Below, piece by piece: positions 9,570 through 49,966 of a stretch of DNA of 64,000 bases. Below the pieces are notes generated by a model, which worked only from the letters and a program-made list of their open reading frames with translations, was not told where the DNA came from and ran no database searches. The stretch is from Heptranchias perlo. Lineage: Eukaryota. The DNA lies in contig NC_090362.1 of assembly GCF_035084215.1 (NCBI RefSeq), positions 5,890,001 through 5,954,000 of the forward strand, in the 5' to 3' direction. Within the stretch, counting starts at the first letter, position 1, and each line of letters starts with the position of its first letter. Both the position numbers and the translations under genes were made by a program.

Positions 9570-10008
9570 TTACCCTTTGACCATTGGCTCTTTGATCACA
9601 CAGTACACGTGCTCTGTGGACACAGAGTTTCGGCCAGTGCTCTCCGATCCTTCACCTGGCCTTGTCTGGCCAGTTGGTGTTTGAACTCTCGTCACCGCGT
9701 ACGCTACAAGCTCGCTGTCATCTCTCTGGTCCCTTATGGGCACCACAGCAGGCGGGAAACCTGGACAGAAGGATGGGAACACGAAGTGTGCTTTTAGTTT
9801 CAAGTTACAAAGGGACACACTCGGAAGATCTGGGCAGTAATTCTGGATACTTACATTCAGCTTCCTGCATCAGCTGCACATCGCCGCCCCTACAGTTATT
9901 GGAGAAATGCAACAATGAAATGTTTCATTAAATGAGCAAAACTATACAGAAAGTCTGCACGAAAACTGAGTGAATCACATCCCTACCTCGGTCCTGGTGC
10001 TGAGAGCC
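9570..10008 (-). CDS. Copy A cytoplasmic exons (10008-9987, 9889-9855, 9760-9570) ending ...ELVAYAVT...TEHVYCVIKEPMVKG*
   Basis: The 22-nt and 35-nt exons restore frame (phase 1>2>1). The terminal exon coincides with ORF 9570..9818 after acceptor ccttctgtccAG. Confidence 0.78.
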
Positions 10009-13000
10009 CTTCACAATTCATGGGATAAGATCGGAAAGATAAATTTAAACATCATTGTAATGAGTCTGCATTTAAATACAATTTTCTGGTTTTAAATTGA
10101 ACATTTTAAAGCTCTCGCTTACCTTTCACAGATTGTCTGTTCCTTCTGATGATGCAAATTACCCCAACTATGCAAATGAGCACAACCGCGCACACGACAT
10201 ACACAAATTTGTCAGTGGCACCAGTGTAAGGATCTGCAGAGGAGAAGCAACATTATGTTCAGTCTGTGCAATCCCGTGTTTTGTGGGACAGCTGATTACA
10301 CTGGTTACCTGGGCTGAAGAACAAAGGTTAGAATAGGTTTCAGGTTAGAATCTGGAATAGTACAATGGCAAAAGAAGAAAATCAAACCAATTTATAATGG
10401 GTACAAACTGTACAACTGATCTAGAATCTCTCAGCTTGAATTATTACTACTTAAATGATCACATTATATTTTAGATTGTATCACTTATTTTCAGTATTTG
10501 TAGGGGTTATGCTGCTGGTCACTGCAGATGTTTGATGATGTTCTCCAGCGTCATTCTCTCTTAGAATTCTAGATGTTGAGGTGGAGGTGTCTGAAGATTC
10601 TGCACTCGGCTCTGTCACAGTAAGGGAGACATTTGCTGCTATCTTCCAGACACGATTCCCAGAACTAGATCCAGCAATGTCTCCTTCTCCATTGTTTCTT
10701 AACTCTAACCAAGGTGATGCTAATGCTATCAAATGGAGATTGCTGGGCTCCCTCTTGGAGATGGTCATTGTCTGGCACTTGTGTGGTGCAAATGTTACTT
10801 GCCACTTATCAGCCCAAGTCTGGATGTTGTCCAGGTCTTGCAGCATGCGGGCATGAACTGCTTCATTATCTGTGGAATTTTGAATGGAGCTAAACACTGA
10901 AAACATCACCGAGCAGCCCCATTTCTGACCTTATGATGGAGGGAGGGTCATTGATGAAACAGCTGAAGAGAGTTAGGACTCGGACGCTGCCATGAGGAAC
11001 TCCTGCAGCGATGTCCCCCTGGATACTGGTGGTGCCGGGCCTTTTTCTTGAACAGTGCAGTCCGTGTGGTGAAGGTGCTCCCACAGTTCTGTTATGTCGG
11101 GAATTCCAGGAATTTGACCCAATGACAATGAAGGATAAGTGGCAATAGGAACAGTATGTGACTTGGAGGGGAGCTTAGAGATGATCATGTTCCCAGGACA
11201 TTGCTGCTCTTATCCTTCTTGATGGTCGAGGGAGGGAGTTGCTGTAGATGGTACATACTGAAGCCATAGTGTGCCAGTGGTGGATTGGACATTGAGCCTG
11301 GTGACAGAGAGGGATCCAGGTGGGAGAGCCCCACCCTGGGAGAGCTCAGTGTTAGTTATGGCATTTCTGCAGGATATTGAAATCCAATATTAATATTGCA
11401 GTGATTTATTTTGTGACACAAATGATATCACCTCACTATGTGCCTGTGAACAAAGAACAATTTCACGAGGTCGGTCTTTATTTTGTGAGATGGTGTAAAA
11501 CAGGTGATAACGAATCGTCAGCCCGTTTTACATCAATCCCCATTTTTATTTCCATTGACTTCAAATCTGTCCTGAAGCAGTGTATCAATGGAAGGCAGGG
11601 AATGGTGGGGTCCACAATAACACATCAGGGGGAATTCACTGACCCTGCCCCTCTCCCCCGACAGTGAGCTCTGCTTAAAGTAGATGCAATTGATTTGGGC
11701 CCATTCCCTGACCCCTGCCCCATGTTTGAGCATGGCTGCCCACTGGTGAATTTACCAGTGATGTCCTTTTATGTTACTCAATGGCCCCATGCATTGTTCA
11801 ACATTTCCAACAGCAAAATATAAACTTCTAATTTCAATGTAGTCACACTGTTTTCTGCTTTTAAAAACACTGTTTAGAGACAGGCTGGGGGCAGACAATT
11901 AGTGACGAACTTTCCCTTACACCATCGTGAATTTCCACCTCAGCGTCCTCATTAATAGGGCCACCTGCCCCTCTCCCCCTCCCCCTTCTCCCCACAGCAA
12001 CCTCTCTCACTCTCCCCATTCCCCCTCACTCCCCTTCCTCCCCCTCTCTCCTCCAGGTTACCTGGGACGAAGAACAAACTTTACCGGTTAGAATCTGGAA
12101 TAGCACAATAACGAAGGAAAGAAATGGAACCAACTTATAATGGGTACAAACTGGTTTCTCTCAGCTTGAATTATTTATATTAAATGAGTCACATATTTTA
12201 GATTGTATCACTTACTTTCAGTATTTGCAGGGGTTATGCTGCTGTTCACTGAGGATATTCCAGATGTTGAGGTGGAGGTGTCTGAAGATTCTGCACTCGG
12301 CCCTGTCACAGCAAGGGAGACGTTTGCTGCAATCTTCCAGACAGGTTTCCCTGAATCCTGAACATGTACAACACAGAGATACCTCCCTATGTCTACCCTG
12401 TGAGCTGAGTGTATAGTAAGGTTGTGAGACTGGCTTCTATCAGTAGGATTGTGTGAGTTTTGGTTGGAAATTCGTTGTTCCGATTTTCTATCCACACAGC
12501 AGTGTGTGTTAGAATGTGAATTATAATCCTCAATGTGAACAGAATGCAGACACTTGCTGATGTTTCCAGATGTGATCCAAAACAGAGTGAAGGGCAGGCT
12601 TTTTCTATTCTCAAACTGACAGGGTAAAGTCACACTCTCTCCTTCTGACACTGTCATCAACATAGAGTTTTCTTTGGTGGGAAATATTTCATCTGAATCT
12701 ATAAACAACATTGAAAAAAATATTTGTTAATATAATAATCTCCCCTAATAATCTCCAGTGTGGTACTTTGTCAAAAGATTTCCTAAAGTCCATGTACACC
12801 ACATCCACTACACTTCACCATGTCTGATAGCTCCTCAAAGCTTGGTCAAGCATGTTCCTCTTGAAATCCGTGCTGGCTACTCCCCAATACCTCCCCTGTT
12901 ACCTCCCCTGATACCTTCCCCGATACCTCCCTGATACCTCTCCTGATAGCTCCCCTGTTACCTCCCCTGTACCTCCCCTGATACCTTCCCTGTACCTCCC

Positions 13001-16000
13001 CTGATACCTTCCCCAATACCTCCCTGATACCTCTCCTGATAGCTCCCCTGTTACCTCCCTGATACCTCCCGAATGCCTTCCCCAATACCTCCCCAATACC
13101 TCAAATGACACCACCCCGTTACCTCCCCGATACTTCCCCTGATACCTCCCCGATAACCCCTGCTACCTCCCTGATATCTCCCCCAGTTACCTTCCCCTGA
13201 TACATCTCTTGATACCTCCCGATATCGCCCCGGGACACGTACCACTTTGGATTATCACAAAGAATAAGTTGTGGTTTTCACATCCATCTCCTGTCAGTGT
13301 GACCAAGGACAGACAATCCGATGATCCATTTCCTGTGGAATCCTGAGCCGTGCAGGTAAATACCATAGAGTTTGATGTCTTCACATCGAATGTCAGTGAC
13401 TGAGACTCCATTCGATCTTCATTTGTTTTATGTTTTTTACACTCTGGCTGATTTTGTTTTTTGCTCTTCTGAGGATTGTTGTTTCCACAAGATTCAATTT
13501 TCATCCCTTTTTTCTTACATTTTGTTTTGCCCATTTCTGTTCCGAGATCACTGGTACTCCACCAGGTTACTTTATTCCCAGCACCAGCGGGTACGTTGCA
13601 TTGCAGAGTGGTGAAATCCCCTGGTCCTCGAGAGAAGAGATAAGTGGATCCTACAGGGAAAGGGCAGAATCAGATAGAGATAAATAACATTCCATACAGG
13701 AAAGGTCATTAAACACTCAGTGTGAAACAAAGCCTCTCACAGTAAATGAAGGAATGGTATTTTTTAAAACTGCACAATGGCTTGTAATAGGCCAGTTTAT
13801 TGTTGTTCCTTTCACAAAATTCTTTGCCACAGTCTCTAAATTAGCAAATCCACTTGGTGTTACAAATTACTTTTGTGTCAAATTACATTTTCCAAATTGT
13901 TTCATTGACGCTTGTTGACAACGTCTTCATTATTTTTTGAGATCTACTAGATCACCCTGCAGGAAGCGGATGATTACAGACATCAGTTAATGTCAGGATT
14001 AGATCGGGCTGTGATGCCCCCCATGGTCCAGCAGCCTGCTGATTCTGACTGTCGAGACTTGTATATGAAGAATGGCCACTCGCACGAGGTGCTGGAGGGC
14101 GGCTGGCACCCGGGGAACAGTAATCCGGCACCTGGGCCTGGAATCGTGCTGATCAGGAAAGAGTTCAACTTATTGGTCAGTCTCCTGTAACGTTGCACAT
14201 GGAGACTCAAGACTGGTGCAATCTCTAGTTGGGGCGGGGTTAAAAGGAGGGTGATAATTGGACCAGGGTGCACCGTCATAATGCAGTCCTTGGCGTGTAA
14301 TTGGCAAATGAATTTCAATATAGATAAGTGTGAGGTGGTACATTTTGGTAGGAAGAATAAGGAGGGCCACAAACTCCTTGGATAGTAGGAGTCCAAATGT
14401 GGCAGAGGAGCAGAGGGATCTGAGGGTACAGATACACAAATCACTAAAAGTAGTGACACAGGTTAATAAGGTCATAAAAAAGCAAACCAAGCACTGGGAT
14501 TCATTTCTAGAGGGATAGAATTGAAAAGCAGAGAAGTTATGTTAAAATTGCATACAACCTTGGTTCGGCCACACCTGAAATACTGTGAACAGTTCTGGTC
14601 TCCATATTATAAAAATGATATAGAGGCACTGGAGAAAGTGCAAAAAAGATTTACTAGGATGATACCAGAACTGAGAGGTTATACCTAGCAGGAAAGATTG
14701 AACAGGCTGGGGCTCTTTTCTCTCGAAAAGAGAAGGCTGAGGGATGACCTGATTGAGGTCTATAAAATTATGAAAGGGTTTGATAGGGTAGACGTAGAGA
14801 AGATGTTTCCACTTGTGGGTGAGACCAGAGCTAGGGGCCATAAATATAAGATAGTCACTAAGAAATCCAACAGGCAATTCAGGAGAAGTTTCTTTACCCA
14901 GAAGTGGTTAGAATTTAGAACTTGCTACCACAAGGAGTAGTTGAGGTAACTAGGCATAAATGCATTTAAGGGGAAGCTAGATAAACACGTGAGGGAGAAA
15001 GGAATAGAAGGATATGTTGATGGGGTTAGATGAAGTAGGGAGGGAGGGGGCTCATGTGGCATATAAACACAGACATGGACCTGTTGGGCTGAATGGCCTG
15101 TATCTGTGCTGCACATTCTATATACAATATACCTTGATTTTATATTACTATTTTTAGTTAAATATCAAAACTTACAACAATCTGGGAAGCAGAGAAGTAG
15201 AGTCAGTTGGAGCACAGGAACTTCTCTGGAGAACAGACTGAGGAGCCGGGAAACACAAATCCGAGTGCTACAGTGCAACCACTGGTGGGAGGGGGTAATT
15301 GCAGTGTGACAAGTTTAAAAGGAACAAAAGAGGATGTCTAAAAGTGCTTTACAGCCAATGAACGACTTTTGAAGTGTAGTCACTGTTGTAACGTAGGAAA
15401 CAAGGCAGCCAATTTACTCCCAGCAAGATCCCACAAACAGCAATGTGATAATGACCAGATAACCCGTCAGTTATGCTGGTTGAGGGATAAATATTGGCCA
15501 GGTCACCAGGGAGAATTCCTCTGCTCTTCTTCGAAAAAGTGTCAGTGGATCTTTTACATCCACCTGAGAGGGTTGACGGAGCCTCACTTTCACGTCTCAT
15601 CTGAAAGACGGCACCTCAGACAGTGAAAGAGGCCATTCAGCACATCTTTCCTGTGCCAGCTCTTTAAAAGAACTATCCAATTAATCTCACTCCCCTGCTC
15701 TTTCCCCATAGCCCTGAAAATTATCCAAATCCCTTTTGAAAGACACAATCGAATCTGCTTCCACCGTTCTTTCAGGCAGTACAATCCAGATTATAATAAC
15801 TCGCTGCGTAAAGATTGCTCCTCGTGTCGCCTCTTGTTCTTTTGCCAATTATCTTAAATCTGTGTCCTCTGGTCACCGACCCTCCTGCCAGTGGAAACAG
15901 TTTCTCCTTATTTATTCCATCAAAACCATGCAAAATATTGAACATCTCTATTAAATCCCCCTGAACTTTCTCTGCTGTAAGTTGACCCACCCTCTCTACT

Positions 16001-18971
16001 ACACAAAGTCTGCATAGAGACCCCACCTGACACAAAGTCTGGGTAAAGATTCCATATTACACAGAGTCTGAATAAAGAACTCCCCCATTACAGTGAGTCT
16101 GGATAGAGAACCCCATTACACAAAGTCTGGATAAAGACCCCTCCCCCATTGCACAGAGTCTGGATAGAGATCCCCCATTACACAGAGTCTGGATAGAGAT
16201 CCCCCATGACACAGAGTCTGGATAGAGATCCCCCATTACACAGAGTCTGGATAGAGATCTCCCATTACACAGAGTCTGGATAGAGATCCCCCATGACACA
16301 GAGTCTGGATAGAGATCCCCCATTACACAGAGTCTGGATAGAGATCTCCCATTACACAGCCGGGGGAGAATCATACAAAGGATGGTTGTGGTTGTTGGAG
16401 GTATATAAGCTGAGTTCAAGGATATCACTGCCGGGCGTCTTCAGGGCAGGGTCCAAAGCCCAACTATCTTCAGCTGCTTCGTCAATGACTTTCCCTCCAT
16501 CATGAAGTAAGAAATAGGACTGTTTGCTGATGTTTTCAGTGTTCAGCTCCATTCTCAATTCCTCAGATAATGAAGCAGTCCGTGCCCGCATACAGCAAGA
16601 CCTGGACAACATCCAGGCTTGGGCTGAGAAGTGACAAGTAACATTCGCAACACATAAGTGTCAGGCAATGACCATCTCCAACAAGAGAGAGTCTAACCAC
16701 CTCCACTTGGCATTCAATAGCGATACCATCACTGAGTCCCCCACCATCAACAATTTGGGGGATCACCATTGACCTGAAACTCGATGGGACCAGCTACATA
16801 AATGCCGTGGCTATTACAGCAGAAGAGAAGCTGGTATTTTGCAACAAGTGGCTCACCTCCTCACTCACCAAAGCCTCTCCAGCATCTATAAGTCATAAGT
16901 CAGGAGTGAGATGAAATATGCTCTATTTGCCTGATTGGGAGCAGCTGCAATAACACTAAAGAAGCTCGACACCATCCAGGCCAAAGCTGTCTGCAGACCC
17001 ATGACCTCCGCCACCGAGATGGACAAGGGCAGCAGGTGCTTGGGAAACCATCACCTGCAAGTTTACCTTCAACTCACACAACGTCCCGACTTGGACATAT
17101 ATTGCTGTTCCTTCATTGTTGCTGGGTCAAAATCCTGGAATTCCCTACAGAACTGCATTGTGGGAGCACGTTCACCACATGGACTGCAGAAGGAGGCCCA
17201 CCAGCACCTTCTCGAGGGCAATTAGGGATGGGCAACAAATGCCGGAATTGCCAGTGACGTCCACATCCCAAAGAATGATAAAAATAAATATGAAGCAATC
17301 ATCTACTTAATGAAGGAAATTAATTTAAAGATGTGCCATTCAATACTGGTTCCTAAGCTTTGGTGTGATTGTATTAACTGATAATGGGTGCAAGGACATC
17401 AGTTAGTCCTGTAAACGGAAATATCTTTGTAAATATTGTCTTTTTAATTGGGGTTTCTGTAGAAGGAGGAAATTAGCTGGTGCTGAATGGTACAGAACCA
17501 AAGACAGACTCAAAATTACAGGGTATCACTTGGTGGAATAGCAATTTTTTGTAAATTATTGCTAAGATAATGAAGTGGAGATGCCGGTGATGGACTGGGG
17601 TTGACAATTGTAAACAATTTTACAACACCAAGTTATAGTCCAGCAATTTTATTTTAAATTCACAAGCTTTTGGAGGCTTCCTCCTTCGTCAGATAATGAA
17701 GTAAGAGAGTTATATTGAACTCGGTAGTTCAATGGAAAAAGATCTCATTAGTCAGGAAACCAGCTTATTACCTAAAGTTATCAATAAGAGATAATTTAAA
17801 TAGATTCTCCTTATATGGAGTTGTATTTTAACTTTTGGTATAATATTGTAACCATCGCTAGTGGTTGGATGAACTTTTAAGTGTTTGTTAAGCATTATTG
17901 CATGTACTGCACGCTTAATAAATCTATGAACACTTATGCTCAATATTTCAAGAATCTTATTGATTTTGAGGATTAGATAGAACATCTCATCATAAATAAA
18001 AACCATCCTCTAACAGAGGATGAGACCGGAATGCTACCAGGGATGAGGGAATTCAGTTATGTGGAAAGACTGGAGAAGCTGGGATTGTTTTCCTTAGAAC
18101 AGAGAAGGTTAAGGGGAGATTTAACAGAAGTGGTCAAAATTATGAAAGGTATTGATAGCGTAAATAAAGAGAAACTGTTTCCATTGGCAGGAAGGTCGGT
18201 AACCAAAGGACACAGATTTCAGATAATTGGCAAAAGAACCAGGGGAGATGAGGAAATAAGAATTTAAACAGCGAATTTACGATCTGGAATGCACTGCCTG
18301 AAAGGGTGGTGGAAACAGATTCAATAGCAACTTTCAAAAGGGATGAATACTAGAAAGACAAAATTTGCAGCGCTATGAGGAAAAAGCAGGCAAGTGGGAC
18401 TAAGTGGACAGCTCTTTCAAAGAGCCGGCACAGACACGATGGGCTGAATGGCCTCCTTCTGTGTTGTATCATTCTATGAGAAGGAGGCATTTCAGCCCAT
18501 TGTATCAGTGCTGGCTCTTTACCAGAACAATCTCATTGCCCCGCTCTCCCCACAGTCCTGTATCTTTCTCTGCTTCAAATGTTTATCCCATTCTCACTTA
18601 AAAGATGCAATGATCTCGGCCTCAACCAGTCCCTGTGGAAAACATTCCAAACTCCAACAACCCTCTGTGTAAAGACATTTCTCCAAACCTCTCTCCTCAC
18701 TCTCTTAGTGACAAGTTTAAACTGACGACTCACGATTAAACCTTTAAACGGCACAGCAAGGACTGTGATACGAGCACATTAAACACCCGCAGGAGAACAG
18801 CACCGATGGGAATCGATATCTTTCAATCTTTATATTTCTCCATTGAGATACAGATCGACACTGAAATTTCCAGACAAGAAATATGTTGAAGATTAACTGA
18901 AAGTATTAATCCTTACCTGTAGCATATTGGAACAGAAGGAACAGACCCACAAACAAAGCACTGAGCATCAT
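9570..18971 (-). CDS. IgSF type I membrane receptor gene, copy A (8 exons: 18971-18917, 13650-13243, 12698-12216, 12094-12062 [in-frame TAA], 10233-10123, 10008-9987, 9889-9855, 9760-9570)
   Basis: All exons have AG acceptors and GT donors with compatible phases (1,1,1,1,1,2,1). Translation gives leader, two Ig-like domains, S/T stalk, TM and a Tyr-motif tail. The same structure recurs in unit B. Confidence 0.85.
10123..10233 (-). CDS. Copy A transmembrane exon DPYTGATDKFVYVVCAVVLICIVGVICIIRRNRQSVK
   Basis: Acceptor cttctcctctgcAG, donor GTAAGC. About 20 hydrophobic residues followed by a basic stop-transfer RRNR, with no charged residue in the TM. Confidence 0.88.
10309..10655 (-). pseudogene. 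Dead relic of the 3' part of an Ig2/stalk exon plus a frameshifted micro-exon copy, inside intron 4 (unit A)
   Basis: VWKIAANVSLTVTEPSAESSDTSTSTS... matches the exon 3 C-terminus. The 5' end is cut off by a CR1 fragment, the donor is mutated GTAAGT>ATAAGT, and the micro-exon copy is 43 nt. Confidence 0.8.
12062..12094 (-). CDS. Copy A 33-nt micro-exon containing in-frame TAA (12083-12081)
   Basis: ctattccAG|AT TCT AAC CGG TAA AGT TTG TTC TTC GTC CCA G|GTAAC. The homologous exon in copy B is open, with AAA at that codon. Confidence 0.65.
12216..12698 (-). CDS. Copy A exon 3, V-type Ig domain 2 plus Ser/Thr-rich stalk (161 codons)
   Basis: VSEGESVTLPC...LFW...HNLTIHSAHRVDIGRYLC is a canonical V-set pattern. 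Acceptor ttgtttatAG, donor GTAAGT, phase 1-1. Confidence 0.92.
12880..13230. repeat. ~12-bp minisatellite (gatacctcccct)n in intron 2; shorter copy 32720-32950
   Basis: Tandem degenerate 11-12-mers. Confidence 0.9.
13243..13650 (-). CDS. Copy A exon 2, atypical Ig-like domain 1 (136 codons)
   Basis: Acceptor ccctttccctgtAG, donor GTACGT, phase 1-1. Ig motifs TTLQC...VTWW...SLTFDVKTSNSMVFTC. Confidence 0.8.
14291..15120 (+). mobile_element. CR1 LINE 3' fragment, present only in unit A intron 1
   Basis: LGLFSLEKRRLRDDLIEVYKIMKG; the empty site is at ~34010 in unit B. Confidence 0.88.
15340..15975 (-). mobile_element. Deu-SINE fragment followed by a CR1 3' end
   Basis: SINE body 15340-15625; GDLIEMFNILHGFDGINKEKLFPLAG at 15625-15975. 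Confidence 0.8.
16000..16358. repeat. 28-30-bp minisatellite (cattacacagagtctggatagagatccc)n, ~12 units
   Basis: Tandem units; same family as 46205-49100. Confidence 0.92.
17577..17690 (-). mobile_element. Solo Penelope pseudo-LTR fragment with degenerate hammerhead motif and 12-bp TSD AGATAATGAAGT
   Basis: Similar to the reverse complement of 52779-52896; direct repeats at 17565-17576 and 17691-17702. Confidence 0.8.
18020..18480 (+). mobile_element. CR1 LINE 3' end
   Basis: YVERLEKLGLFSLEQRRLRGDL; tail gggctgaatggcctccttctgtg...attctatg. Confidence 0.88.
18917..18971 (-). CDS. Copy A exon 1, signal peptide MMLSALFVGLFLLFQYAT(G)
   Basis: ATG at 18971, hydrophobic core, phase-1 donor G|GTAAGG typical of IgSF leader exons. 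Confidence 0.85.
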
Positions 18972-25954: not shown

Positions 25955-26103
25955 NNNNNNNNNNNNNNNNNNNNNNNNNNNNNNNNNNNNNNNNNNNNNN
26001 NNNNNNNNNNNNNNNNNNNNNNNNNNNNNNNNNNNNNNNNNNNNNNNNNNNNNNNNNNNNNNNNNNNNNNNNNNNNNNNNNNNNNNNNNNNNNNNNNNNN
26101 NNN
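25955..26103. other. Assembly gap (149 N) inside the CT microsatellite of unit B
   Basis: Run of N. Confidence 1.
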
Positions 26104-38000: not shown

Positions 38001-41000
38001 CCCGAGAGAGCAGAAATGAAAGGAGGCATGGTGACAGGAGAGAGGGGCCTAGGAGGGGTAAAGAGAAAAGAAGAAAAAAGGTGAAAAAAGGGAAATGGTA
38101 GCGATTTCCTCTTTTTTCAATTGAAATAGTGCTATGGGATCTTTTACGTCCACCTGAGAGGGCAGATGGGGCCTTGGTTCAATGTCTCACCCAAAAGACG
38201 GCATCTCAGATGGTGAAAGAGGCCATTCAGCCCATTATGCCTGTGCCAGCTCTTTGATAGAGCTATCCAATTAGTCCCATTCCCTTGCTCCTTCCCCAAA
38301 GCCCTGCAAATTTTTCCTTTTCAAGTATTTATCCAATTCCCTTTTGAAAGTTATGATTTAATCTGTTTCCACCACCCTTTCAGGCAGCGCATTCCAGATC
38401 ATAACAACTCGCTGCACAAAAAATTCTCCTCATCTCCCCTCTGGTTCTTTTGCCAATCATCATAAATTTGTGTCCTGTGGTTACCGACCCTTCTGCCACT
38501 GGAAACAGTTTCTCCTTATTTACTTTCTCAAAACCCTTCATATTTTTGAACACCTCTATTAAATCTCCCCTTAACCTTCTCTGCTCTAAGGAGAACAATT
38601 CCAGTGTATCTTGGAATGAATCAATATTTGCAGAGGGTCCCTTGGAACATATTAATATGTTCAGAGGGCCCCTTGGAATGTAACAATTTTTGTAGAGAGT
38701 CCCTTGGAATGTATCAATATTTGCAGGGGGGGGGCTCTTGGAATGTATCAATGTTTGCAGGGGGTCTCTTGGAACGTATCAATATTTGCAGAGTCCCTTG
38801 GAATTTATCAATATTTGCAGAGGGTCCCTTGGAATATATCGATATTTGCAGAGGGTCCCTTGGAATATATCAATATTTGCAGAGGGTCCCTTGGAATATA
38901 TCAATATTTGCAGAGGGTCCCTTGGAATGTATCAATATTTGCAGAGGGTCCCTTGGAATGTATCAATATTTGCAGAGGGTCCCTTGGAATGTATCAATGT
39001 TTGCAGGGGGTCTCTTGGAATATATCAATATTTGCAGAGGGTCCCTTGGAATGTATCAATATTTGCAGAGGGTCCAATGATTGGGAAAGCAATTCCAGAG
39101 AATACAATTTTATGAAAGGTAACCATTCACAATGCAGCCTCAATAATGATCCTGTAACTCCAATGAAACTGCTCGAGACAATTAACTGGTAGAAATGTTG
39201 AATTGTCACTAATCGCCAAAATGGATAGCAAGCTGGCTACTAAACAGAAAACAGAGTGTAGGGGTTAAGGGTAGTTACTCAGATTGGCAGAAGGTGGAAA
39301 GTGGTGCTCCACAAGGATCGGTGCTGGGACCACTGTTTTTCACAATTTATATAAACAATTTGGACTCGGGAATCAGAAGTACAATTTCAAAAGTTGCAAA
39401 TGGCACCAAATTGTGGGGGGGGGGGGGGAGTATAGTCAATACTGAGGAAGACTGTGACAAAATACAAGAAGACATTAATAAACTTGCAGAATGGGCGTGT
39501 AATTGGCAAATTCATTTCAATATAGATTTGTGTGAGGTGGTGCATTTTGGTAGGAAGGATAAAGAGGCCACATTTTGCTTGGATAATAAGAGCCTAAATG
39601 GTGTAGAAGAGCAAAGGGATCTAGCGATACAGATACACAAATCACTAAAAGTAGCAACAAAAAAAAGTGAACCAAGCACTGGGGTTCATTTCTAGAGGGA
39701 TAGAATTGAAATGCAGAGAAATGTTCAACTTATATGGAATGGTAGTTAGACCACACTTAGAGTACTGAGCATAGTTCTGGTCTCCATATTATAAAAAGGA
39801 TATAGAGGCTTTAGAGAAGGTGCAAAAAAGATTTACTAGGATGAAACCAGAACTGAAAGGATATACTTATCAGGAAAGAATGAACAGGGTGGGGCTCTTT
39901 TCTCTAGAAAAGAGAAGACTGATGGATGACCTGATCGAGGTCTTTAAGATTATGATAGGGTTTGATAGGGTAGATGTAGAAAAAATGTTTCCACTTATGG
40001 GGGAGTCCAAAACTAGAGGTCATAAATATAAGACAGTCACCAATAAATCTACCTTCCCACCTTCCTTACCCAGAAAGTAGTTAGAATATGGAACTCGCTA
40101 CCACAAGGAGTAGTTGAAGGGAATAGCATAAATGCATTTAAGGGGAAGCTAGATAAACACATAAGGGAGAAAGGTTATGCTGATAGGGTTAGATGAAGTA
40201 GGGAGGGAGGAGGCTTGTGTGGAGCATAAACACCGGCTTAGACCTGTTGGGCCGAACGGCCTGTTTCTGTGCTGTAGATTCTATATAATCCAACTGTGCC
40301 ATGAGTGATAGCAAATGGCTGAAAGGCAGCAGAGAAAATCCCAAGTGAACTAGAAGAACTGCATGTGCCCAACCCATATTGACAGTCCTGAGTTTCCTGC
40401 CCGATGACTGTCTGAAGAACATTCTGAGCCTGACCGAAACCTGGTTCACTAACAGGACATTACACTGCCCCTCTCACCTACACCTTCCACCACCTCTCCC
40501 ACCCAAACCACCATGGACAAGGTGTGCCATTCATCCCCCGAGCTCAACTCAGCCTGGCCCCTTACTCCTCCAGCACCTTTTCTTCACATTCCTCCTCCTC
40601 CTCCAAGTTCTCATTGCTTACTGCCCTCATGACCTGCTCTCCCCAAGTACTTCCTTGTCAAAATCTTTTCCTTATTCTGTTTGCTTCATCTTTAGAACAA
40701 GTGACTCCTCAAACTCAGTGATATTCACCTGCACCTAAAGTCCGCCTGCCCCCTTCTGCCCTCCTGTCCTCACTCATCCTTACCCTTGATCTGCTCCACT
40801 TCCTTGGTAGTTGCTCTACCCCCTTCAAAACTGCTGTCACAACTTCTTATTAAAAAACCTACCCTTAGCTCAGCCCTTTGGTACTCTCCTCTCCAGTTAC
40901 CACCCCACCTCCAACCTCCTCTTCCAGGCTAAGAAGCTCAAACACATCCACCTGCCCCATCGCTCTCTGTTGATCCAAATCCAAACTCACCTGCCTCACA

Positions 41001-44000
41001 CTCCCTGTTCAACCAGCTCTGCACCCACCTTACTCACCACTCCCTGTTCAAATGACCTCAGTATGTTTTCTGTGATGCCCAGATCACCAAGACCAGCCTT
41101 GTCAAAATTACCAACAATATCCTGAGTGATTATAACCACATTATCCTCCTCAGCCATTCCAAGACCCTTGACACAATCGTCCACTCCATTCTGCTCCAAT
41201 GCCTCTCCAACAGCCCACCTCGGTGGCACTGTCCTTACATAGATCCACTCCTATCTGTCTCAGTGGAGCCAGCACATCCTCTGTAATTGCTCTCCTCCCA
41301 TGTCTAATGGTCACCCCCAGCCCACCCAAGGCTCCATCCTTGGCCCTCTCCTATATTCCTCTCAAGAACTCTATCACAGAGTCAGCTTCCATATGTAGCC
41401 AAGTCGATACACCACTTTACCTCTCCACAACTGCTCTCAATTCCAAGACCGATGCTATACTGTCTGATTTCGTATCTGGCATCAAGTTGTGGACAAACCA
41501 GAATTTTCCCAAGCTCAACATTGGCAAAATCAAAGCCATCCCGATCGGCTCCAATACACACTGACCCCATTTGACCCTGAGCTGAACTTCAAATCCACAT
41601 CCACTCCACCACCAATATGTCCTGACTCCACCTCCCAGATATCGCCTGCCTCCATTCCTATCTCACCCTCAGTGCCGCTGGAACCCTCACCCACACCTTC
41701 ATCTCCTTGACGACTGACTTCTGCAATGCTTTCCTCATCGGCCTTCTGAACTTCACCGATCACAGACTCCAGCTCAGCTGGATCAGATCCTATCCCACAC
41801 GGCATCCTGCTCACCTATCACTCCTGCCCTCACTGACCTCCCCCCATGCATTGAATTCAAAACCCTCCTTTACCATTCCCTCCACGGTCTCATCTGATTT
41901 TGGCCTCCTATTCTCCCAGTGCATTGATTTAAAAAAAAACTTTTGCGCAGCGAATAGTTATGATCTGGAATGCGCTGCCTGAAAGGGTTGTGGAAGCAGA
42001 TTCAATCGTGGCTTTCAAAAGGGAATTGGATAAATACTTGAAGGGAAAAAATTTGCAGGGCTACAGGGAAAGAGTTGGGGAATGAGACTAACTGGATTAC
42101 TCTTACAAAGAGCCGGCTTGATGGGATGAATGGCCTCCTTCTGTGCTGTAACAATTCTATGATTCTATAATTCTATAACCCTCCCTCTCGTTCACCCCCA
42201 CTCACTCAGCCCTCGGCCATGCCCCCACACTCCGTGATTCCCTCCCTTAACCCCTCCACCCTCCACCCCTTGGCACATCTTTGACATCTACAAAGGCTTC
42301 CTTAAAATCTACCTCTCCAATCGAGCCTTTTGTCACTTCCACTCACTCGCCTCTTATCTCGAGTCACATTCTTCCCCGTACTTCCATATTTGCAAAACGC
42401 CATCAAACCTTGCCCCACATTAAGGGCTCCGTATAAATAAAAGTTCTTCTTTTGAAAGTGTGGCTCAGTGGGTAGCACTCTTACCTCTGAGTCAGAAGGT
42501 CATGGGTTCAAGTCCCATTCCAGAGACTTGAGCACATAATCTAGGCTGACACTTCAGTGCAGCACTGTCAGAGATGCCGTCTTATGGATGAAATGTTAAA
42601 CCGAGGCCCTGTCTGCCTTCTCAGCTGGGTGTAAAAGATCCCAATGGCAATATTTCAAAGAAGATCAGGGGAGTTCATCCTGGTCAACATTTATTCCTCG
42701 CCAACATCACTAAAACACACTGGGGGGGAAAAAATCGATAGGGTCTATTATTGAGCGGGGGTAGCACGATCCGCTATTAACCTGCGCCCAATGGCCCCTG
42801 CGCAGGTAGGACGAGAATTTTGTCTGGCCTCAGTACTTACCTGCAAGCTGCATTGAAATCCAGGCCTTTCACGTCGATTCAATGGAATTCTCCACCAGCA
42901 GGGGGAGCCCCAATCTCTTAAAGGGAGGATTTCTCTTAAAATCTCTTAAAGGTAGACGGGACCTGTTATTTGCTAAAAATAACAGTCTGCTGCCTGCACA
43001 GAGTCTGAATGGAGATCAGACATCACACACGTAAAACACAGGTGCAGGTCCCGTCCCTATGTTTACACACTGGTGAGTTATGTTAAAACATTGAATAAAG
43101 GTTGCGCACTACTAAATCTCACATCCTCCAATCTGCATGCCACAATTCACCAATCTGCCGATCTGTATTTGTACCGGCCTGCAAGAGTGCATACACCAAG
43201 GTTCTCTGATGACGCAAGAGATGGATAGAAGGAGGGACACCCTATATCTACGGGGGGGGGGGGGGGGAGGGCGGGAGGAGGCCCTCCAGACATATGCTCC
43301 CGAGGCAATGGGAGGCAATAGGGGATGAAGTCAATGCCAGGAGCACAGCACCACGAACATGGATGCAGTGAAGGAAGAAGTTCAATGCTTTGACACAAGT
43401 GGTCAAGGTGAGTGAGGTCAAGTGGTGTCTCCTACCAACTGCACCACGAGCTGCATCCACTGCTCCACGCAATACACCCCCCATCACCCACATACCAACA
43501 AACTCGTTCAAATCAGTACTCAACTCTTTCAATCAGATGCTTCCTCTCACCCTTATGCATTACCACTGTTGCAAGCTGCCCACCCACAACCCACAGGTCA
43601 CACACAGTGGCAACTATTCAACCATGACAGGCACATCACTCAGACACATGTCCCGCTTTCTTGCAGGAGAGGGTGGTACATATCAGGAGGCAGCAAGTGG
43701 CAGTGGCATTTAGCCCCTTGAGCCTGTTCTGCCATTCAATGAGATGATGGCGGACCTGTGATCTAACTCCATATACCCACCTTAGCCCCATATCCCTTAA
43801 TACCCTTGGTTCACAGAAATCTATCAATCTCAGATTTAGAATTCACAATTGAGCTAGTATCAACTGTGGTTGGCAGAAGCGCATTCCAAACTTCTCCCAC
43901 CCTTTGCATCTGGAAGCGTTTCCTAAATTCACTCCTGCACGTCCTGGCTCTAAATGTTAGGCTATGTCCCTGTGTCCTAGTATTCAAGTAAAGCACCTTT

Positions 44001-47000
44001 CACAACCTCAGGACGTGCCAAAGTGCTTTACAGCCAATGAAATACTATCACTAGGAGAGCTCCAAAAACAAATGTCTCGGCAGCCAGAAGCAATAATCCA
44101 GCCACTAACCTGTAAATCCTGCATGGTCCTTTTAAATAGCTCTGGTGGGGGTCCTCCAGGCACTCTTAAGACACGTTTAGATGGTCGGGGTTAAGACTGT
44201 GCGTTGAGTTGAACGTTAAGTGTGAAAATGGTGTCTATCACTTTAAATCAGCATTGCACACTGATTGTATCCATTTTCTCCTTACTTTACATGCAGCCGG
44301 CGTTCGGTATTTGCACATGCGCTAACTCCTATACCAAGATGGCGTCTGGGGCACATCACACTGGAAACGTGTGTGCGCAGCCAAGACACCATCTTGGCAC
44401 CTCGAGAGGCCGCGTAGCGCCGAAACAACGGGTGCTACACGGCCCAATTTAGAGCCCATTATCTCATTGCTGTTTGTGGGATCTTACTGTTTGCAAATTT
44501 GCTGCCATGTTTCCTATATTACAACAATGACTGCACTTTAAATAGTATTTCATTGGCTGTATAGCGCTTTAGCACGTCCTGAGGTTGTGAAAGGTGCTTT
44601 ACAACTGCAAATCTTTCTTCCTTTTCTTGTAATTTTTTTTCTTGTAATGAGAAGGTTTCGGATCAACGCACCAAGCTTATCAGAAAGATCATTTCCGAAG
44701 TGTGCTGGAAGGCTCATATCCTGCTGGTTAAGATGTTAACTGTGTTGACGAAGGGTTGAGCTCTGATTGGGTGGGTTAAGTTCCTGAACAGGTGGGTTAC
44801 ATAGAGCGACTGATAGGGATCTCTGTTTGCAAATTGAGCATCTGGCACAAGCAATTCCCCCTGAAAGGGCTCTGACAGATTGCATCCAGCAACTCTTCCG
44901 CACACTGATCCAGTGACGTAATTCCATCGTCACTTGTATCTGCTACCAGTTGTAAGACTACAAATATGGAAAATACTGTAAAAACACTGTAAAACTGCAA
45001 GACATGAAACAGGCTGCGCGATATGAAACAGTTAACCCCAGGTGCCAGTCAAAGAGACTCCAGCCCATGATCAGTTTCGGAGACTCATTTGCATCAAACA
45101 ATGAGGCCGCGGCGAAGACACATTAACATCGAGACAATGTATAATCAAACTGACCTTCTGAGCCATGTTCAGTCTTGGACGAGAACAGAAGGCCTTTCAC
45201 ACCTAAACAAGATGTGGCGATGCCGGTGATGGACTGGGGTGGACAAATGAAAGGAGTCTTACAACACCAGATTATAGTCCAACAGCTTTATTTGGAATCA
45301 CAAGCTTTCGGAGCTTTCCTCCTTTGGAGCTTTCCTCCTTCCTCACCTGACAAAGGAGGAAAGCTCTGAAAGCTTGTGATTCCAAATAAAGCTGTTGGAC
45401 TATAACCTGGTGTTGTAAGACTCCTTACACCTAAACAATGCTGTGAGCCAAGGGCCCATCACAGTGAGGAATACCGCATTGTCCTGATGCTCTGCAGGTA
45501 GCGGGGAGGAGATAAGGAGTCGTCTCTCGACTTCACAGCTCTGCACAACTAAGGAATTTTGAATCGCCGTGATGCCCAAATGAAGAGGTGTGAATGTCAA
45601 GCAATCCAACAGATTGAAAGCTCAAACCATGGATGAGGCCCAGGTGGGGGTTTGCATGACTGGAACATTATAAGCAGGTACAACAGCAGCACGTGGAGGC
45701 TGAAGTCAGGTGAAGAGGGACGGAGACCAGTCACCTCCAGATCCGGGCCTACAATCAACATCGGTAATGACTAGCTACATGGGTGATTGTAAGTTCCAGG
45801 CAAACCACTAAGGGGTTTGCACTGCGGAGGCTGCAGTCAAGGGAAGAAGGAGGGAAACCGGTCATTTCCAGGTCCAGGCCTACGATCAGCATCGGTAACG
45901 ACTAGCCGCATGGGTGATTGTACGTTTTAGTCAAATTATAGAAGGGTTTGTACTGACGTTTTGTTGGCCTAATAAACTAACAAGTTTGGGTTGAGCTAGA
46001 GCCTGTTTGTCGCGTGCAATTTTGTTCTTGTGTTTCCGAGGTCCAAGAATCGGTGTAAGGCGGAAGGGAAAGGTACACCTTACACAGTATTGCACTACAG
46101 CTCAAGTAAAAACTGAATCACACCTCGCAGTCAGTCTCGATTGTAGCTCAGGCATCAGCCATGTTTGGACTGAGGATGGGAGAAGTCATCACTTCCCATT
46201 CCAGGAAGAGTCTGGATACAGACCCACCCATTACACAGAGTCTGGATACTGACCCCCTCATTACACAGAGTCTGGATACTGACCCCCTCATTACACAGAG
46301 TCTGGATACTGACCCCCTCATTACACAGAGTCTGGATACTGACCCCCTCATTACACAGAGTCTGGATACAGACCCGCCCATTACACAGAGTCTGGATACT
46401 GACCCCCTCATTACACAGAGTCTGGATACTGACCCCCTCATTACACAGAGTCTGGATACTGACCCCCTCATTACACAGAGTCTGGATACTGACCCCCTCA
46501 TTACACAGAGTCTGGATACTGACCCCCTCATTACACAGAGTCTGGATACTGACCCCCTCATTACACAGAGTCTGGATACTGACCCCCTCATTACACAGAG
46601 TCTGGATACAGACCCGCCCATTACACAGAGTCTGGATACTGACCCCCTCATTACACAGAGTCTGGATACTGACCCCCTCATTACACAGAGTCTGGATACT
46701 GACCCCCTCATTACACAGAGTCTGGATACTGACCCTCATTACACAGAGTCTGGATACTGACGCCCTCATTACACAGAGTCTGGATACTGACCCCCTCATT
46801 ACACAGAGTCTGGATACTGACCCCCTCATTACACAGAGTCTGGATGCAGACCCGCCCATTACACAGAGTCTGGATACTGACCCCCTCATTACACAGAGTC
46901 TGGATACAGACCCGCCCATTACACAGAGTCTGGATACTGACCCCCTCATTACACAGAGTCTGGATACTGACCCCCTCATTACACAGAGTCTGGATACTGA

Positions 47001-49966
47001 CCCCCTCATTACACAGAGTCTGGATACAGACCCGCCCATTACACAGAGTCTGGATACTGACCCCCTCATTACACAGAGTCTGGATACAGACCCGCCCATT
47101 ACACAGAGTCTGGATACTGACCCCCTCATTACACAGAGTCTGGATACTGACCCCCTCATTACACAGAGTCTGGATACTGACCCCCTCATTACACAGAGTC
47201 TGGATACTGACCCCCTCATTACACAGAGTCTGGATACTGACCCCCTCATTACACAGAGTCTGGATACTGACCCCCTCATTACACAGAGTCTGGATACTGA
47301 CCCCCTCATTACACAGAGTCTGGATACTGACCCCCTCATTACACAGAGTCTGGATACTGACCCCCTCATTACACAGAGTCTGGATACTGACCCCCTCATT
47401 ACACAGAGTCTGGATACTGACCCCCTCATTACACAGAGTCTGGATACTGACCCCCTCATTACACAGAGTCTGGATACTGACCCCCTCATTACACAGAGTC
47501 TGGATACTGACCCCCTCATTACACAGAGTCTGGATACTGACCCCCTCATTACACAGAGTCTGGATACTGACCCCCTCATTACACAGAGTCTGGATACTGA
47601 CCCCCTCATTACACAGAGTCTGGATACAGATCCCATTACACAGAGTCTGGATACTGACCCCCTCATTACACAGAGTCTGGATACTGACCCCCTCATTACA
47701 CAGAGTCTGGATACTGACCCCCTCATTACACAGAGTCTGGATACTGACCCCCTCATTACACAGAGTCTGGATACTGACCCCCTCATTACACAGAGTCTGG
47801 ATACTGACCCCCTCATTACACAGAGTCTGGATACTGACCCCCTCATTACACAGAGTCTGGATACTGACCCCCTCATTACACAGAGTCTGGATACTGACCC
47901 CCTCATTACACAGAGTCTGGATACTGACCCCCTCATTACACAGAGTCTGGATACTGACCCCCTCATTACACAGAGTCTGGATACTGACCCCCTCATTACA
48001 CAGAGTCTGGATACTGACCCCCTCATTACACAGAGTCTGGATACTGACCCCCTCATTACACAGAGTCTGGATACTGACCCCCTCATTACACAGAGTCTGG
48101 ATACTGACCCCCTCATTACACAGAGTCTGGATACTGACCCCCTCATTACACAGAGTCTGGATACTGACCCCCTCATTGCACAGAGTCTGGATACTGACCC
48201 CCTCATTACACAGAGTCTGGATACTGACCCCCTCATTACACAGAGTCTGGATACAGATCCCATTACACAGACTCTGGATACTGACCCCCTCATTACACAG
48301 AGTCTGGATACTGACCCCCTCATTACACAGAGTCTGGATACTGACCCCCTCATTACACAGAGTCTGGATACTGACCCCCTCATTACACAGAGTCTGGATA
48401 CTGACCCCCTCATTACGTAGAGTCTGGATACTGACCCCCCCATTACACAGAGTCTGGATACTGACCCCCTCATTACACAGAGTCTGGATACTGACCCCCT
48501 CATTACACAGAGTCTGGATACAGATCCCATTACACAGACTCTGGATACTGACCCCCTCATTACACAGAGTCTGGATACTGACCCCCTCATTACACAGAGT
48601 CTGGATACAGATCCCATTACACAGACTCTGGATACTGACCCTCATTACACAGAATCTGGATAGAGACGCCCCATTACACAGAGTCTCGGTACAGACCCGC
48701 CCATTACACAGAGTCTGGGTACAGACCCCCATTACACAGTGTCTGGATACAGACCCCCATTACACAGAGTCTGGATACAGACCCCCATTACACAGAGTCT
48801 GGATACAGACCCCCATTACACAGAGTCTGGATACAGACTCCCATTACACAGAATCTGGGTATCGACCCCCATTACATAGAGTCTGGATACGGACCCCCCC
48901 CCAATACTCAGAGTCTGGATAGAGACCCCCCATTACACAGGGTCTGGATAGAGATGCCCCATTACACAAGGTCTGGATAGAGACCCCCCATTACACAAGG
49001 TCTGGATAGAGACCCCCCATTACACAGAGTCTGGGTACAGACCCAAATTACATAGAGTCTGGATACAGACCCCCCCCATTACACAGTCTGGATAGAGACC
49101 CCACCCCCCAATCACAGTGTCAGTTCCCATTTTCTAACATAACAATCACAAAATGGGCATGTCTGTAATTTACACAGGCATCCCAAGGTGCTGAATTCAA
49201 GCCCCGGTCCCTTTGCTGCCGTGGGCCCTGCCCAGTGGGGTCTTCACCCTTTACAATTCTCCGCACTTTGTAATGGTGTGAGGCTCGGCCAAGTCATCCA
49301 ATATTATTGTTACTTTAGAATTCTCAGTGACAGAGTCTGAACACTAAATCTTCCACAATTTAATTCTGAAAGCGAAGAATAATTCTGCAGTAAGGGCATT
49401 TGGGATACAATCAGTGCTGTTCTCATACAATTATTTAGCACACTTACACCGACTTCAACTCTGCACTGTTTTATCACAGGAGTTGAATCATAGAAGTTTA
49501 CGGTACAGAAGGAAGCCATTCAAGCCTTCGTGCCAGTGCTGGCTCTTTGCCAGAACAAAACTATTGCCCCGCTCTCCCTGGTTCAAATGTTTTTATGCAG
49601 TTTTTCTTTAAAAGATGCAATGAACTCTGCCTCGACCACTCCCTGTGGAAAACATTCCATACTCCAACAACCCTCTGTGTTAAGACATTTCTCTGAACCT
49701 CTGTCCTCACTCTCTTAGTGACAAGTTTAAACTGACGATTTAACCGTGCTGAAATGGCACAGCAAGGACTGTGATACAAGCACATTAAACACCCACAGGA
49801 GAACAGCACCGATATCTTTCAATCTTTATATTTCTCCGTTGAGATCTCGATCGACACTGATATTTCCAGATAAGAAATATGTTGAAGATTAACTGAAATA
49901 TTGATCCTTACCTGTAGCATGTTGGAACAGAAGGAACAGACCCACAAACAAAGCACTGAGCTTCAT
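29040..49966 (-). CDS. IgSF type I membrane receptor gene, copy B, intact 445 aa (exons 49966-49912, 33370-32963, 32382-31900, 31776-31744, 29703-29593, 29478-29457, 29359-29325, 29230-29040)
   Basis: Paralog of copy A with the same exon lengths (55, 408, 483, 33, 111, 22, 35, 191 = 1338 nt), all splice sites intact and no internal stop. Leader MKLSALFVGLFLLFQHAT(G). Confidence 0.85.
29593..29703 (-). CDS. Copy B transmembrane exon
   Basis: Offset +19470 from copy A; one amino-acid difference (QSAK vs QSVK). Confidence 0.88.
29779..30126 (-). pseudogene. Same pseudo-exon relic in unit B (additional 1-bp insertion)
   Basis: Homologous to 10309-10655. Confidence 0.8.
31744..31776 (-). CDS. 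Copy B 33-nt micro-exon (N)SNRKILFFIP
   Basis: ctattccAG...CCAG|GTAAC, open, phase 1-1. Confidence 0.7.
31900..32382 (-). CDS. Copy B exon 3, V-type Ig domain 2 plus stalk
   Basis: VTLAC...LFW...DTGRYLC; ORF 31892..32395. Confidence 0.92.
32425..32570 (-). mobile_element. Short CR1-type 3' tail insertion specific to unit B intron 2, flanked by ATAATC
   Basis: Absent at ~12735 in unit A; gaatcatagaa tail on the reverse strand. Confidence 0.7.
32963..33370 (-). CDS. Copy B exon 2, Ig-like domain 1
   Basis: Same splice sites as copy A; overlaps ORF 32907..33254. Confidence 0.8.
34415..38080 (-). mobile_element. L2-like LINE (degenerate APE endonuclease + RT) inserted into a Deu-SINE, with a nested CR1 3' end at 35705-36080 (+)
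   Basis: RGGGVALI, ILGDFNLH, PTHIHGHHLDL, SDH, NYRLISNLPFLSKVLE, AAFDTVN, GVPQGSILGP; (TTG)n-type tail. Confidence 0.88.
38605..39075. repeat. ~31-bp minisatellite (cccttggaatatatcaatatttgcagagggt)n
   Basis: About 15 tandem units. Confidence 0.92.
39210..40290 (+). mobile_element. CR1 LINE fragment (RT C-terminal half)
   Basis: SGAPQGSVLGPLFFTIYINNLD, GLFSLEKRRL. Confidence 0.88.
40380..42450 (+). mobile_element. Highly decayed L2-like LINE remnant with nested CR1 tail (41925-42175)
   Basis: ILSLTETW, DTPLYLST, IKLWTNQNFPKLNIGK; C-rich sense strand. Confidence 0.65.
42458..44620 (+). mobile_element. Deu-SINE (head 42458-42720, tail 44457-44620) split by a PIF/Harbinger-like remnant (~42722-44457) with a decayed Myb/SANT-like ORF and a nested CR1 tail
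   Basis: A box tggctcagtgg and B box ggttcaagtccc. Insert reads PRFSDDA...RRRDTLY...RRPSRH...QWEAIGDEVNARSTAPRTWMQ*RKKFNALT across frameshifts at 43180-43410. Confidence 0.7.
45211..45426. mobile_element. Palindromic mini-element made of two inverted Penelope pseudo-LTR ends, 12-bp TSD ACACCTAAACAA
   Basis: Arms ggagtcttacaacaccag...tcacaagctttc and gaaagcttgtga...ctggtgttgtaagactcc; TSDs at 45199-45210 and 45427-45438. Confidence 0.85.
46205..49100. repeat. 30-bp minisatellite (cattacacagagtctggatactgaccccct)n, ~95-100 units
   Basis: Highly homogeneous core with degenerate units at the right edge. Confidence 0.98.
49912..49966 (-). CDS. Copy B exon 1, signal peptide
   Basis: ATG at 49966, donor G|GTAAGG, near-identical to 18917-18971. 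Confidence 0.82.

Follow-up and report, generated by a model that had tools for sequence, protein, structure and literature searches.

Two tandem genes encoding receptors of the immunoglobulin superfamily (IgSF) occupy the minus strand of a 64,000-nucleotide stretch of the Heptranchias perlo genome (contig NC_090362.1, positions 5,890,001 to 5,954,000; this whole stretch is called the window, and positions are given in its numbering). Copy A spans 5869-18971 and copy B 25248-49966, and all immunoglobulin (Ig)-like open reading frames of the window lie on that strand. Taken as a whole, the evidence is best explained, with good confidence, by each gene encoding a 533-residue type I membrane glycoprotein made of a signal peptide, a first Ig domain (Ig1), a second Ig domain of the V-set (Ig2), a Ser/Thr stalk, an uncharged transmembrane (TM) helix and a 184-residue tail; A and B are very probably long-tailed members of an unnamed paired-receptor family of jawed vertebrates in which Ig2 carries a second disulfide. 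A preliminary description, made from the letters of the window alone, had presented the locus as a hidden tandem pair of receptor genes. Hidden they are not. The Ig2 exon, searched against 1.84 billion representative proteins, returned two Heptranchias perlo matches of 533 residues (100% over the exon) and 683 residues (97%), and the 533-residue cluster holds two members, XP_067829442.1 and XP_067829443.1, both titled “uncharacterized protein”, which differ at 32 residues and thread exactly onto copy A and copy B. Both genes had previously been annotated in RefSeq as separate 533-residue models, without name, family or function. The searches were done exon by exon, and the full-length work used the database proteins that they returned.

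Each copy has nine coding exons of 55, 408, 483, 111, 22, 35, 187, 35 and 266 nt (Table 1), with the same lengths in A and B, as had been proposed; every intron is bounded by an AG acceptor and a GT donor, and the exons are in phase in both copies. Transcript evidence came from four RNA runs of one sample, which hold 13-24% of the sampled words of 9500-13700. Over that interval the RNA contigs cover exons only, with joints at 9760|9855, 9889|9987, 10008|10123 and 10233|12216 that all show CT..AC ends, corresponding to GT..AG on the minus strand; exon-only coverage together with intron-spanning joints identifies the runs as cDNA. Further loose ends at 12216, 12699 and 13243 match the adjacent exon ends and link exon 2 to exon 3, while the loose end at 13652 equals 49914-49943 in the copy B leader and joins the leader to exon 2; the start ATG proposed at 49966 for copy B stands. 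At the other extremity, exon 7 is spliced to exon 8, since the letters of the loose end at 9574 are those of 6301-6330 (25680-25709 in B). The donor GG|GTAAGA takes in the stop codon previously placed at 9570 (29040 in B); with a GT donor at this point and the RNA running onward, the coding sequence must extend into two further exons, 8 (35 nt) and 9 (266 nt), which contribute 99 more residues and three more Tyr. The tail is Tyr-bearing, as described, with five Tyr rather than the two once counted. Exons 1-7 of the earlier eight-exon model are retained, its eighth, evidently a 33-nt micro-exon, is skipped in the RNA, and the true exons 8 and 9 had been missed. Neither the micro-exon nor a stalk-like pseudo-exon is spliced in the RNA contigs, the 10233|12216 joint having zero letters between its sides. 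The RNA check thus upholds the exon borders, which carry GT-AG joints, and disposes of the micro-exon and the stop, copy A not being shown separately. As a stalk exon, 10487-10663 was rejected: its donor reads AT in both copies, a frameshift is present in copy B, and it is not spliced in RNA.

Copy B is clearly transcribed: the RNA contigs have copy B bases at 13 of 14 variant letters, from which its expression follows. Two contigs show no differences over the A-specific clusters, and their source could be copy A or the four-Ig paralogue described below, which is A-like there. Over the transposon fragment at 10769-11190 in intron 3, the depth of RNA contigs reaches thousands, compared with tens on the exons; this depth is due to transposon transcription from other genome sites and not from the copy A gene.

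Self-comparison of the window reveals a tandem duplication with a period of ~19.47 kb and one gene per unit on the minus strand, so that the proposed tandem receptor gene pair is confirmed. The segments 19397-25954 and 26104-30165 align with 1-6577 and 6633-10694 at 98.9% and 99.2% identity, respectively, 30378-32424 and 32723-34009 align with 10687-12740 and 13004-14291 at ~95%, and the leader region (49608-50275 vs 18598-19269) is 88% identical. Identity between the units is mosaic: the 3' half and the intergenic DNA stand at ~99%, the surroundings of the Ig exons at ~95%. A and B diverge by 0.4-0.7% across the 3' half and by 1.4-5% across the introns flanking the Ig exons, the Ig exons themselves differ by 4-5%, and the differences are concentrated in 13413-13516 and 12604-12682; single positions that distinguish the copies are 9734, 10128, 10178, 18926 and 18967. 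To judge from these alignments, the mosaic looks like patchwork gene conversion between paralogues. Ig1 shows 17 non-synonymous and one synonymous changes between the copies, Ig2 16 and six, and the tail zero amino-acid changes; the counts are small, and this ectodomain change would fit relaxed or diversifying selection.

An assembly gap interrupts intron 7 of copy B, and this raises the question as to whether copy B arose as an artefact of assembly, both haplotypes of a single gene having been set in tandem around the gap, all the more as unit A matches ~10 kb around it at 99% identity. This explanation was considered and rejected as highly improbable. The ungapped sequence 1-25954 holds the 3' exons 8 and 9 twice, at 5869-6330 and at 25248-25709, and the tandem arrangement is for that reason independent of the gap; in addition, the Ig exons differ by the 4-5% given above, the leader region is as little as 88% identical, copy B carries 15.6 kb of extra intron, no long match was found by self-comparison between the sequence beyond the B leader and that beyond the A leader, and RefSeq treats the copies as separate genes. 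Coding exons and reading frames all stay clear of the gap, whose distance from exon 8 of copy B is 245 nt, and both of its flanks are collinear with copy A, their order and orientation unchanged. Between A and B, one base differs in exon 7 and none in exon 8, and because these exons are near-identical in the two copies RNA alone cannot prove the join across the gap. The coding sequence is unharmed by the assembly gap, and the gene model is corrected to nine exons and a longer tail.

The general features of a type I IgSF receptor are all present: a hydrophobic leader (residues 1-19) ending ATG|S, the Ig fold, a single TM helix and a tail. The layout of leader, Ig, Ig(V), Ser/Thr stalk and uncharged TM helix given in the preliminary description holds in both copies, as do the unusual Cys patterns. 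Ig1 (residues 20-155) has a B-F Cys pair at 36/118, extra Cys at 63, 73, 89, 131 and 142 and a Lys-rich insert, and scores under the Pfam cut-offs. Ig2 (residues 156-285) has Cys 181 and 263 plus Cys 204, 221 and 222; it is a V-set domain in Pfam (E 1.5e-7), is modelled with a predicted local distance difference test score (pLDDT) of 82-96, and matches the IgV domains of VSIG4, CAR, nectin and B7-2 in VIA with Z 14 and a root-mean-square deviation (rmsd) of 2.3 Å. The stalk is 52% Ser/Thr, the ectodomain has five N-glycosylation sequons, the TM helix is modelled at 322-349, and the tail, with Tyr at 392, 424, 489, 517 and 527 and the conserved Tyr motifs VAYAVT, HVYCVI, TYSLI and NPIY, is disordered in the structure model. 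For the whole model, Foldseek returned generic two-V-domain matches only (scFv, pIgR, CD226, JAML; rmsd ~10 Å), and ESM Atlas generic V-set clusters only.

Of the 88 matches in the search of representative proteins, 40 reached E<=1e-10. All sharks examined have homologues, with more than one gene in several species, and full-length homologues were found among ray-finned fish (sturgeon, gar, salmonids, herring relatives, conger and characiforms) and among tetrapods (newt, axolotl, tailed frog, lizards, turtle, crocodilians, kiwi and echidna). Wherever the source is known, their titles are uncharacterized, hypothetical or automatic (“Ig-like domain-containing protein”). An hhalign comparison of shark with bony-vertebrate profiles aligns 347 columns, starting at the signal peptide and reaching a cytoplasmic motif (E 2.9e-51, probability 100). 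The family alignment yields common patterns for Ig1 (C...W...GxFAC...C..FFIVA), Ig2 (PFxxYWIK..STCL..N.HCCVD..HNLTI..DSGxYLC..W) and the tail (KG...R...ECxPY[AS]V), all of them collinear in A and B except for the lost Tyr of ECxPY[AS]V; among 10 shark proteins, the tail motifs VAY[AS]VT, STEHVYC, YSxI and MEENPIY are invariant. The suggestion of an uncharacterised cartilaginous-fish family holds as to its being unnamed and undescribed, and fails as to its confinement to cartilaginous fish, given the profile match to bony vertebrates. Word-index searches with the family alignment or with a characiform member brought no named relatives, and six LOC identifiers of family members have no mention in searchable papers. 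No therian mammal is found among the matches whose source is named (about one third of the 88), and no skate or ray protein among the matches with a known source. It is quite possible, if somewhat short of probable, that this is an ancient undescribed receptor family dating from the last common ancestor of jawed vertebrates, with a two-Ig ectodomain and the conserved ECxPY[AS]V tail motif, a long-tail/Asp-TM pair in sharks that gene conversion keeps alike, survival from sharks to a monotreme and an apparent absence from therians.

Beside the long forms there are short-tailed proteins, found in Heptranchias, Heterodontus, Pristiophorus and Scyliorhinus torazame, whose tail is free of Tyr, whose TM helix contains an Asp and which have a juxtamembrane Cys; paralogues with a charged TM segment, for which the preliminary description proposed to look, are present in these four shark species. 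Their TM motif is ICIDGV or LCLDGV, where the long forms have ICIVGV, and in three of the four species the tail closes with a short motif of the VMEA(K/N) type. At the position of this Asp, the short forms have Asn in Mustelus and His in Hemiscyllium. Ectodomain identity between long and short forms amounts to 89-99% inside one species (Heptranchias 99%, Mustelus 91%, S. torazame 90-93%, Pristiophorus 95% and Hemiscyllium 96%) and to 45-74% from species to species, and, as far as these sequences tell, such homogeneity within species is what gene conversion would yield in paired receptors. Taken with the short forms, A and B show two features of paired receptors, a near-identical ectodomain pair and a charged (here acidic) TM residue in the short form, and lack a third, an immunoreceptor tyrosine-based inhibitory motif (ITIM) or switch motif (ITSM) in the long form. 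In Heptranchias, the 683-residue paralogue XP_067829355, encoded on the same contig and misnamed “serine-rich adhesin for platelets-like”, has four Ig domains. One RNA run joins the Ig2 exon to a TM exon that is out of the window and encodes NPYTRCTDRR, as in XP_067829355, with an Asp in the helix; in the same run there is also an Ig2-to-Ig1 junction, for which a circular RNA formed by back-splicing of exons 2 and 3 is an alternative source. Both features, aligned at 12215-12269 and 13609-13649, agree with the four-Ig paralogue. A short-tailed four-Ig partner gene apparently adjoins the window on the left, and the expectation of further copies on that side is supported by the RefSeq paralogue on the same contig and by RNA with its TM exon.

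The receptors could not be placed by the earlier reader in the CD300/pIgR-like, NITR, DICP or SLAM families, and this judgement is borne out by the features that can be compared. NITRs have a V domain with a J-like FGxGTxLxV motif, succeeded by an I domain; there is no FGxG in either shark protein, and the V-set domain is membrane-proximal. The SLAM/CD2 group is marked by an N-terminal V domain that lacks the canonical disulfide, a C2 domain behind it and an ITSM, TxYxx(V/I), in the tail; both shark domains have the B-F Cys pair and there is no ITSM, and in VIA, NTB-A and 2B4 match no better than any other IgV domain does. A closer case is the V-domain group in its extended sense (CD300/pIgR/TREM-like), which is said to include skate MDIR and teleost NILT, and of which the shark family would be a divergent branch rather than a separate family. 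Ig2 matches the repeated V domains of a mormyrid protein titled “polymeric immunoglobulin receptor-like” at 24% identity and E 2e-6 over the whole V domain, with the Cys ~9 residues past the Trp aligned (SKC vs SSC), and pIgR is both the best single-sequence match in the PDB (E 0.005) and among the top Foldseek matches. Of the two V-domain Cys that characterise CD300/pIgR, one beside the C-strand Trp and a disulfide partner some 8 residues further on, only the second is found: the hallmark Cys of YWC is absent and replaced by Ile (FWI), and the second disulfide must therefore use a Cys of the HCC motif. With the family profile, Robo, titin and FcεRIα rank above pIgR among PDB sequences, the matches being on the F-strand motif only; the group offers nothing comparable to Ig1, to the TM region or to the ECxPY[AS]V tail; and the family motifs are absent from 251,033 characters of NILT supplements, files whose protein content is unchecked. 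Shark Ig2 thus resembles the V domains of pIgR, CD300 and PIGRL in its V-set fold and in one extra Cys at the same place after the C-strand Trp, and differs from them by the conserved HCC, by the unrelated Ig1 in front of it and by another tail. That the family belongs within this group is doubtful, with some chance of being correct.

Far less probable is the alternative that these proteins are cartilaginous-fish representatives of the DICP family (for diverse immunoglobulin domain-containing proteins) of ray-finned fish and coelacanth. DICPs occur as D1a-D2a-D1b-D2b forms beside D1-D2 forms, have four conserved Cys per Ig domain, and lie in clusters with inhibitory, activating and ambiguous forms (10.1101/2021.06.11.448072). 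The shark family shares with them the exon plan of separate signal-peptide, D1, D2, TM and tail exons, two- and four-Ig forms (D1-D2 and D1-D2-D1-D2), four Cys per domain and clusters of mixed form types. The order of the domains is however reversed: bowfin DICP exons (Table S1) specify an N-terminal V-like D1 and a short membrane-adjacent D2 of ~92 residues with CxLxCxxxC, whereas the membrane-proximal domain of the shark proteins is a V-set domain of ~130 residues. None of six family motifs (YWIK, HCCV, SPYAV, DSGQY, FFIVA and DSGTY) is found in 140,740 characters of DICP supplements, the activating DICPs shown have Arg in the TM helix and not Asp, gar DICPs are labelled LG29 while the gar homologue of the shark family is on a 61.6-Mb sequence, another gar chromosome, and no match titled DICP appeared in the searches. 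Domain order, Cys pattern and motifs all disagree with DICP membership, in a comparison confined to motifs and to the reading of sequences. Among the paired IgSF receptors, a known kind, the family of A and B is hitherto undescribed, and its age far exceeds that of cartilaginous fish alone.

The paired IgSF clusters (KIR, SIRP, PILR, CD300 and paired Siglecs of mammals; NITR, DICP, LITR and NILT of bony fish) are similar in that they consist of tandem type I Ig receptors, multi-copy in several sharks for the present family, with long Tyr-motif tails beside short-tailed forms with a charged TM residue, and with ectodomains that are near-identical within a species and diverge fast between species. 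The shark family differs from them in being another sequence family, in having Asp instead of Lys/Arg in the TM helix and in lacking a canonical ITIM in the Heptranchias long forms, and it is kept in tetrapods up to a monotreme. A regulatory role on immune cells is somewhat favoured, and an inhibitory one is plausible. In such a role, the ectodomain would bind a fast-evolving ligand; the long tail, once phosphorylated on Tyr, would dock SH2 or PTB proteins, or might drive endocytosis; and the Asp-TM partner would signal via a membrane adaptor. On the paired-receptor reading, gene conversion keeps the ectodomains near-identical in each species, and the TM and tail types are conserved between species.

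Rather than in immune signalling, the two proteins could act in adhesion or as endocytic receptors for cargo or transcytosis, a role suggested by tails that have YxxΦ motifs (YCVI, YSLI) and NPIY, the classic sorting and PTB motifs, and no canonical ITIM, ITSM or activation motif (ITAM), and by the strong conservation of the tail among sharks. This role is unlikely in view of the pairing of long forms with short forms that have a charged TM residue, the homogenisation of ectodomains within species, the mostly non-synonymous nature of the A/B ectodomain changes, and the canonical ITIM kept at the homologous site in several other sharks.

Several observations weigh against the assignment of A and B to a paired immune-receptor family, or at least temper it. 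A motif check found no canonical ITIM, of the form (S/I/V/L)xYxx(I/V/L), ITSM or ITAM in the A and B tails, which contain YCVI, YSLI and NPIY. The Tyr of the ITIM-like ECxPY[AS]VV site is lost in both Heptranchias copies, which read ECFPPAVVP at the start of exon 7 (9755-9760 and 29225-29230); at this site, other sharks have ECLPYSVVP or ECVAYSVVP, and a canonical ITIM is present in white shark (LPYSVV), whale shark (VAYSVV), epaulette shark (VAYAVV) and one Scyliorhinus torazame protein (LPYSVI). In the partner, an acidic residue provides the charge of the TM helix; the majority of activating receptors use a basic residue, FcεRIα and CD16 being precedents for an acidic one. Ig1 is modelled at pLDDT 46-79 only, and at pLDDT 39 when predicted alone, and its non-synonymous excess is not significant (18 changes; binomial estimate p~0.08). 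All RNA contigs over the TM exon have the B base at 10178, transcription of copy A is not separated from that of its near-identical four-Ig neighbour, and the tissue from which the RNA sample was taken is not known. Placement of A and B among the long-tailed members of the unnamed family nonetheless remains the very probable reading.

The non-rearranging Ig receptors of cartilaginous fish are still unmapped, and this family, traceable at full length from sharks to echidna, of classic paired-receptor design in sharks save for the acidic TM residue, and with a conserved tail motif unlike ITIM, ITSM or ITAM, constitutes a testable case for the origin, the upkeep and the apparent therian loss of paired receptors. 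If the family is indeed an ancient undescribed one, it would be an old inhibitory/activating recognition system with a ligand and with an adaptor for an acidic TM residue.

Table 1. Exons and related features of copies A and B, with the evidence for each.
Feature	Position	Strand	Evidence or remark
Copy A exon 1: ATG and signal peptide MMLSALFVGLFLLFQYATG, phase-1 donor	18917..18971	-	exact RefSeq protein match
Copy A exon 2: Ig1, divergent Ig-like domain with Lys-rich insert and extra Cys (C63, C73, C89, C131, C142)	13243..13650	-	both borders reached by RNA contigs
Copy A exon 3: Ig2 (V-set; Cys 181, 204, 221, 222, 263) and Ser/Thr stalk	12216..12698	-	Pfam V-set, VIA, RNA joint 10233|12216
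Copy A candidate 33-nt micro-exon, intron 3	12062..12094	-	contains TAA; unused in RNA contigs
Copy A pseudo-exon: duplicate of the 3' end (stalk) of exon 3	10487..10663	-	donor GT mutated to AT; unspliced in RNA
Copy A exon 4: uncharged TM helix FVYVVCAVVLICIVGVICII and RRNRQSVK	10123..10233	-	
Copy A exon 5: cytoplasmic segment of 22 nt	9987..10008	-	RNA joints on both sides
Copy A exon 6: cytoplasmic segment of 35 nt	9855..9889	-	RNA joints on both sides
Copy A exon 7: tail segment containing LVAYAV and HVYCVI	9574..9760	-	ends on GT donor, no used stop
Copy A exon 8: 35 nt, beyond the span first described	6296..6330	-	RNA loose end at 9574 = 6301-6330
Copy A exon 9: end of tail with HTYSLI, KPYPLK, NPIY and stop codon	5869..6134	-	
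Copy B exon 1: ATG and signal peptide MKLSALFVGLFLLFQHATG	49912..49966	-	RNA loose end = 49914-49943
Copy B extra 15.6 kb of intron 1: transposon fragments and 30-bp minisatellite (46207-49102)	34010..49607		no counterpart in copy A
Copy B exon 2: Ig1	32963..33370	-	copy-B-specific bases in RNA contigs
Copy B exon 3: Ig2 (V-set) and stalk	31900..32382	-	
Copy B candidate 33-nt micro-exon, open frame NSNRKILFFIP	31744..31776	-	not seen in RNA contigs
Copy B pseudo-exon: stalk duplicate	29957..30134	-	donor GT mutated to AT, and 1-nt insertion
Copy B exon 4: TM helix	29593..29703	-	B base at the equivalent of 10178 in all RNA contigs there
Copy B exon 5	29457..29478	-	RefSeq protein mapping
Copy B exon 6	29325..29359	-	RefSeq protein mapping
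Copy B exon 7	29044..29230	-	RefSeq protein mapping
Assembly gap, copy B intron 7, between exon 7 (29044-29230) and exon 8 (25675-25709)	25955..26103		CT-rich simple repeat
Copy B exon 8, across the gap from exon 7	25675..25709	-	
Copy B exon 9, with stop codon	25248..25513	-	

Repeats are found in and around both genes. At 19400-19430, the boundary of the tandem units is marked on the minus strand by a run of ~20 G followed by G-rich repeats, ~430 bp upstream of the copy A leader exon. The minisatellite at 46207-49102 in intron 1 of copy B has a 30-bp unit in ~98 copies with 94% matches, and a related array, with a 29-bp unit, occupies 16000-16359 within intron 1 of copy A; an array with a 31-bp unit is found at 38610-39075. 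In intron 2, a degenerate 12-bp repeat, ATACCTCCCCTG, fills most of the interval between Ig1 and Ig2 (12880-13220 and its copy B counterpart), and intron 7 contains fragments of a LINE reverse transcriptase at 8604-9176 in A and 28074-28646 in B. Beyond the genes, a 4.5-kb GC-rich satellite at 57562-62078 is built from the 15-bp unit GTGTCGGTTTCCCCG, with reported periods of 30, 45 and 75, 61% GC and a very strong skew of T over A.

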